Shown here in pieces: positions 56,191 to 63,116 of a stretch of DNA of 64,000 nucleotides (position 1 is its first letter; each line of letters begins with the position of its first letter). Source of the DNA: Prasinococcaceae sp. CCMP 1430 (Eukaryota > Plantae > Prasinodermophyta); contig RQSC01000518.1 in NCBI GenBank assembly GCA_013416795.1, positions 162,533-226,532 on the forward strand, read 5' to 3'. The notes under the pieces were generated by a model, which was not told the DNA's origin, searched no databases, and saw nothing but the letters and a program-made list of their open reading frames with translations. The position numbers and the translations under genes were made by a program.

Positions 56191-56961
56191 ATGTCTTTGT
56201 CTCTTCTTCATGCGAAAGAGAGTTTTTCACGATTGGGATGGGCAGGGTGCACCTTTGGAACAAGTCTTTGGTGTGGAACCTTCTATGTGCATGACTTTGT
56301 TGACAGTCTTTTGCTCTTTCCTTCTTTGAGCGGGACTTCTTTTGGGTTTACTGCCCACGCACCAACTGACCTTTTTGAAGTTCTTTTCCGAGTCCTTTTT
56401 TTCTCAACTTTGTGCACCTGCCTTCCAACTCTGATCTGCTTTTTTCTTGAAGCCGCTCACCCTGGGTTGGATCAAAGTGAAACTTGGACTCTTCATTCCT
56501 TTCTTTTTTTCTTTGTTTTTGGGTTTCTTTTTCTTCTTTGGGTGGGAAAAATCCTTCTTTTGAGTACAATCTCTGGATTGGTTTTTTTGTATGGAGTGGA
56601 CCAGAACCATCAAGACATACATACAGGTCTCCTTCCCCTTCTTCGAGGACTTGGGTGGATCCGTTTTCTCACGCACACCCTTTCTTTGGGCTTTTTCATC
56701 TTTCTTCTTTGTGTGTGTCTTCCCTTTCTTTTGAAAAAAACAGGATACACAGTGATTGATGGAAAGAGTCTTCGAAAACTTTGGGCACTTGGAACCCTTG
56801 GATGTTTGAGTTTGGCTCTCCCAACCCCAGACGTTTTTCTCGGTCTTTTGGGAATCTGGATAGGCTTTCTCTTTCTCTTTGAAATCAGTCTGGGTTTTCT
56901 TTTGTACACACAGATCCGTCAGACTGTCCGAAAGACTTTCTCTTTCCAAGAAAGTAGTTTA
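56191..56961 (+). CDS. tatC: Twin-arginine translocase TatC (mttB); ends at TTA 56959-56961 if UUA is stop, otherwise TGA at 57003
   Basis: LHAKE...R, FTAHAPTDLF, PGLDQSE, LPTPDV, FLFEIS pattern; about 6 TM segments. Confidence 0.85.
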
Positions 56962-56996
56962 TTTATATATTTTTTATATAAGTGGGTTTCTTCTTT

Positions 56997-57079
56997 CGGA
57001 TGAAGAGGGATTCGAACCCCCGATACTTCCGTATGTCAGTTTTCAAAACTGATGCCTTCGACCACTCGGCCATTCATCC
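56997..57079 (-). tRNA. trnS: tRNA-Ser(UGA)
   Basis: Cloverleaf; tcagt-ttTGAaa-actga. Confidence 0.93.
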
Positions 57080-57088
57080 AAATCAAGG

Positions 57089-57160
57089 TGGGTTCAGTAG
57101 GACTCGAACCTACGGCCTGTCGGTTAAAAGCCGATTGCTCTCCCACTGAGCTATGAACCC
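57089..57160 (-). tRNA. trnK: tRNA-Lys(UUU)
   Basis: Cloverleaf; loop ctTTTaa. Confidence 0.92.
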
Positions 57161-57235
57161 TCAATAAGAGTACAATCTTTCTTTGAAGAAAGGATGGTTT
57201 TGCTTGTATGTGTACAAAAAAGAAGGAAGAAAAAC

Positions 57236-57317
57236 TACGAATAGAGGGACTCGAACCCCCAAGGCGCAAGCCACTGGTTCCTAAAACCAGCGTGTCTACC
57301 GATTTCACCATATTCGC
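57236..57317 (-). tRNA. trnL: tRNA-Leu(UAG)
   Basis: Cloverleaf; ctggt-ttTAGga-accag. Confidence 0.93.
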
Positions 57318-57369
57318 ATCCGGAAACTCCGGTGTCTTTGTACAAAGACAGATCCATCTTCTGAAGAAA

Positions 57370-57594
57370 TCAGAAAACGAAAAGAAGAAGGAAGGCCATC
57401 ATAAGCGCGAAAAGCGCAATCGCCTCGGTAAGGGCAAACCCAAGAATCGCAATTCGGAAAAGGGTCTGCTCAAGAGCTGGGTTTCGGCTCACACCAGTAA
57501 TAAGAGATCCGAACACAGTTCCGATTCCAACTCCAGCACCTGCGAGTCCGATGGTTGCGCATCCTGCGCCAATAAGCTTTGCTGCTTGAGACAT
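57370..57594 (-). CDS. atp9: ATP synthase subunit 9 (c)
   Basis: [27 protein letters not shown]...RNP...[11 protein letters not shown]. Confidence 0.99.
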
Positions 57595-57787
57595 GAAAAG
57601 TCAAAAAAAAGGTCAAGAAAGTCTCCTTCCTTAGGAAACGCCGTACAGAAAGGGTAGAGGGTTTCTTTTCACACGAATACAAAAAAAAAGAAGAAAGACT
57701 TCTTTTCAAAAAATCATTTTTTCTCTATTAGGCGGTTACAAAAGAAAAAACCTTCTTTTCAAATCTTTCTGTTTTTTACCTTGGTTT

Positions 57788-60224: not shown

Positions 60225-60323
60225 AAAGAGAAAAGAGAGTCTGCTTCTTTGAGGGTTCAGACGAAAAAAAAAGAAAAATATGAAAAAGAAGAAAGAAAGA
60301 TCAACCCAAGAAAAAGGTCTCAC

Positions 60324-60665
60324 TCAGTTTCGCTTCAAGAACCCTGGAATCTGGCCACGATTGGCAAGGCGACGAAGGCTGTGTCGACTCAACCGAGTTT
60401 TTGAAAAAACTCCACGTCCTCGACCCGTGAGTGTACATCGGTTTCGCACACGGGTTGCTGAAGTGTTGCGATCCAGAGAAGCAAGGTAAAGGCCAACCCC
60501 GTATCGATAGTCCGCTGGAAGACGAAGGTTCTTCATCAAAGACCGGAGAAGTCGACGGAAGAACCCCTGTGTACGAACCTTTTCTCGACGAAGACGGTCA
60601 GTGGTGACCTTTCCTTTTCCCGGAAGTCGAGCAATTTCATAGAGATGAAAGCCTTTGAGTGCCAT
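60324..60665 (-). CDS. rps14: Ribosomal protein S14
   Basis: [20 protein letters not shown]...[13 protein letters not shown]. Confidence 0.95.
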
Positions 60666-60676
60666 AGTAGAAAAAA

Positions 60677-61303
60677 TAAAGCCGGAGATTCTTTGAAGAT
60701 TTTTGAAGGCTTTCTTTGAATGTACCTTTGAACAGCCTTCTCAGGAAGGAGAGGAAATTGACGTTCCGTCAAATATCGATACCCCTCTTCCTTTGTTGTT
60801 GTTGGTGTGTGAATACACACTTGAAGGTAAAACCCTTCTTCCAAAAGAGGTTTCAAAGGCTCGAGTTCTGGACAAGAGTCCAAAGAATTCAAAGTAAAAG
60901 AAAGGTCGCCCTGAAGGTTCAATCCCGAAAGAGGAATTCCCTGAAAGGTTGGGTCCAAAGGGAAAAAAGTGTGGATGCATCGGGAAAGAAAGCTTTCAGC
61001 ATACTCCCCCTTCAAAGAAAGTGTAAATCCAAGAAGGTCGTTTTTTCGAAGATGGAAAGAAGCATGATGATTTTCTGCTTGCGCACTTTCAGGGTAGATT
61101 CCTGTAAGAAAACTCATGAGTTTCAAAAAACGAATCCCTTTTTTTGGATCAGATGCCAAGGTTTTTTCTGTACAATGAAGAGAAACCTGGAGAGGGCCGG
61201 TCACCTTTCCAGTATTCAAAAGACTGTCGTACACGCACACAGTTTTTCCATGTGCATGAAGGCGAGACATCAAGGGGTAGGGTGTGTAGGCGTAGGGTGT
61301 CAT
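60677..61303 (-). CDS. rpl5: Ribosomal protein L5; ends at TTA 60679-60677 if UUA is stop, otherwise runs to 60536 inside rps14
   Basis: LTGIYP...A...[12 protein letters not shown]...L.G..AESFL; position between rpl14 and rps14. Confidence 0.85.
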
Positions 61304-61335
61304 AAAAAGCACAAAAAAAGAGAAGGTCAAATCTT

Positions 61336-61710
61336 TCACAAAATTCGGGGTGAAAGACTGAGAATTTTCGTATGTTCACGCCGAAGTTCAACTCCTGCTT
61401 GTGTATGAACTCGGGTGCCCAAAGGCCCGCCTTGAGCATTCAACAACACACAGGCGTTATACCCCTGGGTCACAGAACTTCCATCTGAACGTTGGGATGG
61501 TTTCAAAGTATTGACAATAACTGCCTTGTACATTGAACCAAGACGAACTTTAGGGTTCTGAATCTTTGGACTCAAAGACCGAACACTCACAAGAATGGTG
61601 GCACCCACGCTTCCATATCCCTTTGGTTGGACTCCATAGACTTTGAGACACCGAACCTTTCGGGCTCCAGAGTTATCAACAACGTGTAGTCGACTGCCTG
61701 TAATGATCAT
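61336..61710 (-). CDS. rpl14: Ribosomal protein L14
   Basis: MII.GSRL.VVDNSGARKVRCL, SVG..I.VSV, RSDGS, N.CVLLN...P.GTRV. Confidence 0.96.
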   Translation of the reverse strand: MIITGSRLHVVDNSGARKVRCLKVYGVQPKGYGSVGATILVSVRSLSPKIQNPKVRLGSMYKAVIVNTLKPSQRSDGSSVTQGYNACVLLNAQGGPLGTRVHTQAGVELRREHTKILSLSPRIL

Positions 61711-61751
61711 AAAGAGAAAAAAGAAAGGAAAAAAAGAAGGAAAAACCCAGG

Positions 61752-62192
61752 TCAGTTTTCCGTTCCCCACTCGGCTTTTTTCTGAGAACGATCAATAAAC
61801 CGAAGAGGGACTTTAAACTTTTCTGACAAAAGAGCACAGGCCTCCTGAGCTGCGGTCTTGGAAACCCGGCTCATTTCGAAAAGAACTTCTCCTTTTCGAA
61901 CACGAGCAATCCAATGATGAGGGTTCCCTTTTCCCTTTCCCATTCGTACTTCTTGGGGCTTTCGTGTGACAAGGACGTCTGGAAAGACTCGAATATAGAG
62001 TTTTCCTTGACGCTTCAAAGTTCGGGTAATCACACGACGGGCAGCTTCAAGGGAACGAGCTGGAAGTTTACAAGGGTGGAGTGCTTGAATCCCATAAATC
62101 CCAAACATCAAATCTCCTGTGGTTGCAGTTTTCTGAAAGCTTCCCTTCATTTTCTGATATTTTCGAAAGGGTGTTCGTTTTGGTTGAAGCAT
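61752..62192 (-). CDS. rpl16: Ribosomal protein L16
   Basis: MLQPKRT.FRKYQK, FGIYGIQAL, LEAARR, IRVFPD..VTRKPQEVRMGKGKG. Confidence 0.97.
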   Translation of the reverse strand: MLQPKRTPFRKYQKMKGSFQKTATTGDLMFGIYGIQALHPCKLPARSLEAARRVITRTLKRQGKLYIRVFPDVLVTRKPQEVRMGKGKGNPHHWIARVRKGEVLFEMSRVSKTAAQEACALLSEKFKVPLRFIDRSQKKAEWGTEN

Positions 62193-62409
62193 ACAAAAGA
62201 AAGAAAGGAAAAAGGAGGCAAAAGAAACCACACATACTTTCCCTCCATACGGGGAAAGGGTGAGAAAGGAAAAACCTTACGTACTAGAATGTTTCAAAAA
62301 AACCTTTCTTTCAAGAAAAAAATCTACAAAAGATTCTTTGGTGAGAAACAAAGTGGGAGGAAGGAAAGGAAGTCCAAAGAGAAGAGTCTACCTTTGATTC
62401 AAGGCTTTT

Positions 62410-63116
62410 TAAAAAGGGGTTTTTCTCTGTTGTATCCTTGGTTGGAGCAGTATGAATCCATACTTTTACCCCAATTGTTCCTCGTTTGGTATAGGCAAGA
62501 GACTGGCTATATCCAATCTGGGCAGACAAAGTACTCAAGGGTGTTGATCCAAACTTTTTGACAATGGTTTGTTTTTTCCCTCCACCCTGTTTTCCGAGGG
62601 GACCAGACACTCGAAGGCGGAGGCCAAGAATACGGTTTGAAAGAAGACTATCAGACCCGATCTGCCCTTTGAAACCTTCCTGAGAAAGGGAAGGTTGGGT
62701 TTTTGTGTACAAGGTCCCCAACCGACCTGTAATTGCACGAGGTGAAATTCGATGTTCAAAGGCAAGAGCGATTCCTTTCGAAAGAAGGTCAGGGTGGGCC
62801 AAAAGGTCTTTTGCTTTATGAAATCGAAGGTCCACACGTTGGCCACTATAGGCTTCCAACCCTTGAAGGAAGACCCGAAGAGAGGGACCCCCAGAAAGAC
62901 GACCAAAAGGTCGTCCAAGAACCCCACTTCCCTTTGTTTTTCGGACGGGGTTTTGAGAACTCTCCTTCTGAGGCGGGAAAAAAAAGGAAGTATGTTGAAG
63001 AAGGGTGGTTTTTTCAGAAAGGGAAGGGTTCAACCCTTTCCAAGTCGATCCAGAGAGAGTTTCAAGACCAGTGTTTTCCAAAGGTTTCAGACCATGGAAA
63101 ACCAAAGGTTTTTGAA
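62410..63116 (-). CDS. rps3: Ribosomal protein S3, C-terminal part only (5' cut at n 63117); ends at TTA 62412-62410 if UUA is stop, otherwise 62311
   Basis: ILGLRLRVSG, GSTPLSTLSAQIGYS...AYTKRGTIGVKVWI. Confidence 0.85.

Follow-up and report, generated by a model that had tools for sequence, protein, structure and literature searches.

Four sense codons have been driven from the mitochondrial reading frames of Prasinococcaceae sp. CCMP 1430, UUA, AGA and AGG completely and AUA almost completely, and UAG is unused as a stop. The genes in question lie in a stretch of 64,000 nucleotides (contig RQSC01000518.1 of assembly GCA_013416795.1, positions 162,533 to 226,532 of the forward strand), here called the window and numbered from its first letter, in which the mitochondrial DNA starts at 43688. 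A first-pass annotation, made from the letters of the window, had proposed that UUA is a stop codon in these genes and that UUG stays leucine. The finding is better described as the loss of four sense codons that have re-emerged at the frame ends, possibly an incipient change from sense to stop. UUA is not special but one member of the lost-codon class; AGA, AGG and ATA, which the first reading had missed, show the same depletion and the same placement at 3' ends. UUA may be the end of translation in one or two genes, but a true change of the code seems doubtful, and one of the three genes put forward for it, rps3, does not stand up.

Codon usage in the mitochondrial genes

The maximal open reading frames (ORFs) of the window hold nine in-frame TTA codons. 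Five of them precede the likely translation starts of atp8, orf189 and rps13, and four are at 3' ends, in tatC (56959 and 56974), rpl5 (60679-60677) and rps3 (62412-62410). When the starts are matched to those of the relatives, the 20 window genes (3,812 codons) have TTA at those four 3' sites only, so that the claim that no gene body of the window contains this codon in frame holds, and the TTA coordinates and distances given with it were correct.

The full gene set was rebuilt from public contigs that are nearly identical to the window (97.6-99.5%). Such contigs come from environmental and culture sources and were recovered via protein look-ups. Two of them (L004 and L017) supply cox1, rps19, the full rps3 of 550 codons, atp6, nad1, nad5, nad4, nad2, cox2, cox3 and nad6. 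A long-read contig with many frameshifts (L023) was used for single sites only. Untrimmed, the set consists of the 30 ORFs as called from L004 and L017, 7,933 codons, among which there are 4 TTA, 3 ATA, 7 AGA and 4 AGG. All 15 occurrences of TTA, AGA and AGG are either in a leader or at the extreme 3' end. The leader occurrences are codons 2, 11, 16 and 27 of rpl6 and codon 35 of nad5, which is within an upstream tRNA, and those at the 3' end are codons 193, 197, 209, 232 and 242 of rpl5, 257 and 262 of tatC, 543 and 547 of the 550 in rps3, and, in rps4, the last codon but one. None of the three turns up in those stretches of rps3, rps11 and rps4 that are poorly conserved. NCA, NGA and NAA codons are common in the untrimmed ORFs, unlike codons ending in TA.

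Gene bodies were obtained by trimming leaders and 3' ends, where the extent of the trimming was our own choice, and comprise 7,445 codons in 28 genes; expected counts were calculated from the positional base frequencies. A count over the whole mitochondrial genome had been suggested as a check of the UUA proposal, and TTA occurs 0 times in frame in the bodies, as compared to 119 expected, and 157 and 47 times in frames +1 and +2. AGA is likewise found 0 times in frame (60 expected; 80 in frame +1, 122 in frame +2), as is AGG (57 expected; 116 and 155), and ATA is found twice (122 expected), with many copies in frames +1 and +2. For TTA the shortfall is much larger than chance would produce. 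TTA, AGA and AGG are absent from the frames though mutation supplies them freely, as seen from the off-frame counts, which would be expected of codon disappearance. The approximately 44 terminal codons, on the other hand, hold nine lost codons, one ATA among them. This is the strongest single contrast in the data. Codons that are merely slow would hardly be distributed in this way, and the pattern follows readily if translation has already ended at the places where they are found.

The sister lineage (1,330 codons) shows the same depletion and has standard stops only, which implies that the loss of the codons is older than their occurrence at 3' ends. A polymorphism test among strains for selection against changes from TTG to TTA found one change as compared to about four expected from the AAR, GAR and CAR sites, but the test is underpowered.

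tRNA genes and stop codons

The lost codons UUA, AGA, AGG and, with its two exceptions, AUA correspond to the missing tRNAs L(uaa), R(ucu) and I(cau). The absence of trnL(uaa) from the window, which had been noticed before, extends to the contigs that cover the whole mitochondrial genome, and trnR(ucu) and trnI(cau) are also absent from this whole-genome inventory. The two leucine tRNA genes reported earlier are both present in the window according to ARAGORN, trnL(caa) at 54996-55082 on the plus strand and trnL(uag), which reads CUN, at 57235-57318 on the minus strand. By standard wobble the anticodon caa reads UUG alone, and UUG is a frequent leucine codon with this tRNA gene of its own. The published mitogenome of Prasinoderma coloniale also lacks trnL(uaa), trnR(ucu) and trnI(cau) and has trnL(caa), a gene listed as unique to Prasinoderma among the prasinophytes (PMC3873408, Table 2).

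In the whole mitochondrial set of about 31 genes, about 26 end in TGA, 5 in TAA and none in TAG. The heavy use of UGA means that a mitochondrial release factor of the RF2 (release factor 2) type must be active. With UGA dominant and UAG unused, recognition of the RF1 (release factor 1) type may be free to drift. In chlorophytes the mitochondrial factor mtRF2a is reportedly lost (PMC6821328).

The ends of tatC, rpl5, rps3 and rps4

The tatC gene (mttB; 56191-57003, plus strand, Pfam TatC) has 270 codons when read to its standard TGA at 57001-57003. This stop is within trnS(uga) on the opposite strand (56996-57080, minus strand; ARAGORN and Rfam), as the first-pass annotation had said, and overlaps the 3' end of the tRNA gene by 8 nucleotides. 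The tail of 14 codons contains TTA at 56959-56961 (codon 257), ATA at 56965-56967 and another TTA at 56974-56976, and in no gene other than tatC does UUA come first among the lost codons. All 10 strains compared have TTA-257, and the four codons in front of it show three alleles. In the sister lineage, TatC (P0020/L010) ends at a TAA located 4-5 codons past the position of the window TTA. The tatC gene is thus compatible with UUA as the end of translation. One tatC (L009) was left aside as uninformative; it has no stop and no TTA and reads through two antisense tRNAs, most likely because of a homopolymer frameshift in a short metagenome contig. An AT-rich inverted repeat (56957-56985) is kept among the strains, whose codons in front of the TTA vary. 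When the tatC trailer was folded as RNA, the repeat formed a hairpin after the TTA with z = -1.7, which is not significant and gives no evidence of a processing signal.

In rpl5 (60536-61303, minus strand, Pfam L5_C), 255 codons long when read to the standard TGA (60538-60536), there are three lost codons in sequence, AGG at 60727-60725 (codon 193), AGA at 60715-60713 (codon 197) and TTA at 60679-60677 (codon 209). The TTA is 11 nucleotides before the ATG (60665) of rps14 (60324-60665, minus strand; Pfam S14 and ORF list), and reading on to the TGA makes an overlap of 130 nucleotides with rps14, both as described earlier. The related Rpl5 proteins (P0002-P0004, 73% and 66% identical) stop short of the TTA by 12 codons. 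Compared codon for codon, the tail of the sister is CAA ... CAA TGA, and that of the window is CAA AGG TAC ATT CAA AGA, so that AGA-197 holds the ancestral stop position, the TGA of the sister, with AGG ahead of it. The trailer up to the ATG of rps14 contains AGG, AGA, TTA and two CTA, and near-identical strains differ at codons 194 and 195, with three alleles for each. It is very likely that translation of rpl5 has no useful continuation past the AGG/AGA region, and UUA is not the first obstacle that it meets; as a case of a UUA stop rpl5 is ambiguous. Folding of the rpl5-rps14 junction gave z = -1.1, not significant, and no sign of a processing signal.

The 3' part of rps3 (62311-63116, minus strand, Pfam S3_C), a gene cut in the window by an N at 63117, ends in a TGA at 62313-62311 and has three lost codons, a TTA at 62412-62410 that is private to this strain and AGA at 62337-62335 and 62325-62323. 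The sequence after the TTA had been called implausible as protein, but this did not hold up. The site is TTT in nine other strains (L001, L004-L008, L023, L024, L025) and GTA in the 73% lineage (L002). A word-index protein search with the rps3 C-terminus gave no match; an exhaustive one brought up three Rps3 proteins from lineages further away (P0023, P0024 and P0025, at 68%, 50% and 34% identity). They keep the tail past the TTA site, with an invariant Trp and an invariant Phe, and end 1-7 residues after an F-V/L/I motif. The tail is conserved and therefore coding, which refutes rps3 as a case of a UUA stop; its TTA is a recent private substitution within a conserved C-terminal extension.

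The whole Rps3 (L004, 7341-8993) is 550 residues long. It contains a long insertion in its interior, and the C-terminal extension adds about 30 residues behind the S3_C domain. This extension, with its invariant Trp and Phe, is common to four lineages down to 34% identity, and ordinary S3 proteins end where it starts.

The first lost rps3 codon in the P. coloniale-type strains is AGA-543, three codons past the conserved motif of F and a hydrophobic residue. Past the AGA codons, strains that differ by 1-2% show the loss of the stop by a change from TGA to CGA (L001/L008) and an insertion of one nucleotide (L024/L025). Stop loss, indel and codons with several alleles among strains this close indicate that the trailers behave as unconstrained DNA. 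The fourth gene, rps4 (55176-56126, plus strand), has AGA as its penultimate codon (56118-56120) and ends AGA AAG TGA in the window, as compared to ...CAT AAC TGA in the sister lineage (L010).

Interpretation of the gene ends

On balance, the position of the lost codons and the state of the sequence behind them suggest that translation of tatC and rpl5 in effect ends at these codons. As to how such an end would come about, recognition by a release factor and stalling at an unassigned codon, followed by rescue, seem about equally likely. The loss of the codons accompanies the loss or conversion of the matching tRNA genes, trnL(uaa) having become trnL(caa) and trnR(ucu) and trnI(cau) being absent. 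The lost codons are now in frame only in 5' leaders, before translation begins, and in the last few codons, where the stop of the sister lineages is reached or just passed and translation would be over. The ribosome would effectively finish at the UUA of tatC, the AGG, AGA or UUA of rpl5 and the AGA of rps3 and of rps4, and the sequence past these codons would evolve as an untranslated trailer.

A number of observations weigh against an end of translation at the lost codons, and most of them speak for the standard code as the best surviving alternative. In that explanation the codon bias is extreme but UUA keeps its meaning as leucine, through inefficient reading by a modified tRNA-Leu(CAA) or an imported one, and AGA and AGG are arginine. 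On this view tatC has 270 codons, rpl5 has 255-267 with an overlap into rps14, and both rps3 and rps4 are read as far as TGA, as in the published annotation of P. coloniale. The authors of that annotation state that all the mitochondrial genes use the standard code, with no discussion of the codons (PMC3873408). Pedinomonas, furthermore, uses UUA freely with only trnL(caa) (PMC12574857).

The most direct of these observations are three independent in-frame TTA variants, all compatible with leucine. Codon 59 of rpl16, a conserved leucine that is TTG elsewhere, is TTA in L001, a contig 99.8% identical to L008. Codon 69 of rpl5 in the sister lineage is TTA in L002 and CTA in L003, and the sole other difference between the two is synonymous. 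The third is the private TTA in rps3 of the window (codon 518), which replaces Phe at a hydrophobic, variable site upstream of the conserved W...F motif. This is what would be expected if UUA is still leucine, and reading it as a stop would truncate essential ribosomal proteins. TTA variants at leucine-type sites in the relatives thus argue for a residual decoding as leucine.

A missing tRNA gene is also no proof that a codon is unreadable. ACA and ACG are used 139 times (120 and 19), and only trnT(ggu) is encoded (window 51369-51444; L004, L017), which implies that import of tRNA or some unusual decoding exists for threonine. Two AUA codons of tatC (56617-56619 and 56860-56862) stand at a conserved Ile, where L010 has ATT, and at a site of Val, and codon 81 of nad9 (50540-50542, plus strand) is ATA in this strain and in contig L014 and ATG in 12 others. 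AUA is thus in use, which suggests that a codon lacking a mitochondrial tRNA gene can be decoded.

The bias itself is not confined to codons without a tRNA. CTA occurs 6 times in the bodies where 148 are expected, despite its cognate tRNA, and NUA codons are avoided even where cognate tRNAs exist; in the untrimmed ORFs CTA makes up 9 of 951 CTN codons and GTA, which also has its tRNA, 45 of 552 GTN codons. If TTA is scaled to the bias of CTA only about 5 would be expected, which weakens the statistics of the depletion. Finally, a standard TGA follows the lost codons closely, 13 codons on in tatC, 7 codons on in rps3 and 1 codon on after the AGA of rps4.

The standard code does not, however, account well for zero TTA, AGA and AGG in the gene bodies, poorly conserved stretches included, set against nine lost codons in the terminal parts. 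The overlap of rpl5 and rps14 that it entails would be unique in the genome, and the trailers that it takes as coding tolerate stop loss and frameshifts. We consider this explanation possible but not probable.

The original proposal, in which UUA has become a stop, read in its strict sense as the work of a modified mitochondrial release factor, and UUG is leucine, is a sub-case of an end of translation at the lost codons. Parts of it stand. UUA is purged from the bodies and has no cognate mitochondrial tRNA gene, UUG is leucine, and a conserved TTA stands close to where tatC is expected to end and, in rpl5, ahead of rps14. UGA is moreover the main stop, and the RF2-type factor that must then be active is of the kind tied to UUA as a stop in Labyrinthulea and in the plastids derived from pedinophytes (PMC12574857). 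Other parts do not. The C-terminal alignments with orthologues, one of the checks suggested for it, are compatible with a UUA stop in tatC, ambiguous in rpl5 and against it in rps3. TatC alone meets UUA as the first lost codon, within 4-5 codons of the stop of its orthologue, and the TTA of rpl5 is 12 codons past the ancestral stop and behind AGG and AGA. With rps3 refuted, at most 2 of about 31 genes would end in UUA, and the in-frame variants at leucine-type sites would be stops within genes. A true reassignment of UUA seems doubtful to us.

A wider change is also conceivable, in which UUA, AGA and AGG would all serve as stops, recognised by an RF1-type factor that has been remodelled and has a longer PxT loop, UAG having fallen out of use; we find this rather unlikely. 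A nuclear copy of mitochondrial DNA (NUMT) was dismissed as an explanation, as the segment matches intact environmental mitogenome contigs at 97.6-99.5% and all its ORFs are open.

The mitochondrial part of the window

The mitochondrial DNA segment (43688-64000, no strand assigned) has a guanine plus cytosine (GC) content of about 45%, and was recognised by its composition, by its rRNA and tRNA genes and by BLAST against mitochondrial contigs (L011, L017 and L004) with matches beginning at 43688. Positions 1-43687 are nuclear-type DNA with 60-73% GC, and the junction at 43688 is simply the start of the mitochondrial piece. The segment contains 20 protein genes (Pfam, except for atp9), rns, pieces of rnl on both strands with a group I intron, and 15 tRNA genes. 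It shares with the published mitogenome of P. coloniale an rnl split across opposite strands, a mitochondrial sdh3, the gene trnL(caa) and the cluster rps11-rps13-rpl6-rps8-rps14-rpl5-rpl14-rpl16-rps3, and the nuclear genome is very GC-rich in both (PMC3873408). From these features, the alga is almost surely Prasinoderma coloniale.

At the far end of the segment, the single N at 63117 cuts rps3. Where L004 and L023 continue with the 5' 847 nucleotides of this gene and then with rps19, orf137 and cox1, the window has the 5' part of rnl instead, probably because the assembly was joined at a repeat. Between contigs, the block nad5-nad4-nad2-cox2-cox3-nad6 is found in both orientations beside nad1 (L017 as compared to L018-L021), flanked by inverted copies of trnM(cau), and the block from cox1 to atp8 is likewise inverted (L004 as compared to the window and L023). 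The inverted blocks look like flip-flop isomers of the mitogenome.

Comparison with known codes and implications

In the mitochondria of Labyrinthulea such as Thraustochytrium UUA is a stop and UUG is kept as leucine, which is the code of NCBI table 23. A recent survey from 2025 lists the change of UUA to stop in the mitochondria of Labyrinthulea, of Pseudoscourfieldia/Pycnococcus and of Marsupiomonadales, and in the dinoflagellate plastids derived from pedinophytes, and ties each of these four settings to changes in release factors (PMC12574857). The mitochondrial genes described here resemble those of Labyrinthulea and the pedinophyte-derived plastids in that UUA is absent from the bodies and has no cognate tRNA gene, UUG is kept as leucine, and termination is of the RF2 type, with UGA dominant here. 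In those systems, however, many genes end in UUA and RF2 carries a specific substitution (PMC12574857), and here it is at most one or two genes.

Pseudoscourfieldia marina (Pycnococcus provasolii) and the Marsupiomonadales are green algae in which, much as here, the codon is confined to those 3' ends that would be expected to carry a stop. For them an altered codon-binding region of the release factor mtRF1a has been proposed (PMC12574857, PMC6551751). They differ in that both UUA and UUG are stops and no UUR tRNA is present, and in Pycnococcus UGA is Trp. Here, in contrast, UUG is a frequent leucine codon with its trnL(caa), and UGA is the main stop.

The vertebrate mitochondrion (NCBI table 2) is another parallel, as AGR codons, AGA and AGG, are absent from its gene bodies, tRNA-Arg(UCU) is missing, and a few genes have AGR, at their extreme ends only. 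Here too AGR is confined to gene ends, and AGA holds the ancestral stop position in rpl5. Unlike the vertebrate genes, rps3 and rps4 have a TGA 1-7 codons after AGR, which means that AGR is not needed there as a stop. A third parallel is the unassigned codon, as in the Sphaeropleales, where AGG is avoided without reassignment (PMC6551751). The similarity is that the missing codons match the missing tRNAs exactly and that the sister lineage is depleted and has standard stops. The difference is that the lost codons have here re-emerged at the frame ends, where one of them replaces an ancestral stop.

No earlier report of UUA as a stop or of missing codons in Prasinoderma was found in the literature searched, and Prasinoderma is not mentioned in PMC12574857, PMC6551751 or PMC6821328. 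What is new is a clean loss of four sense codons and of UAG, with the codons reappearing at frame ends, at the base of the green plants. The pattern looks like the stage of codon disappearance that theory puts before codon capture. It also has a practical side. Annotating this genome with table 23 would be wrong on the present evidence, and the database proteins for Rpl5 (267 residues), and perhaps for TatC, Rps3 and Rps4, probably include residues at the C-terminus that the cell does not produce. If UUA and AGR are indeed read as stops, this would be the fifth independent change of UUA to stop and a parallel in the green lineage to the AGR termination of vertebrates, and an early stage of such a change would have been caught in a culturable, genome-sequenced, deep-branching alga.

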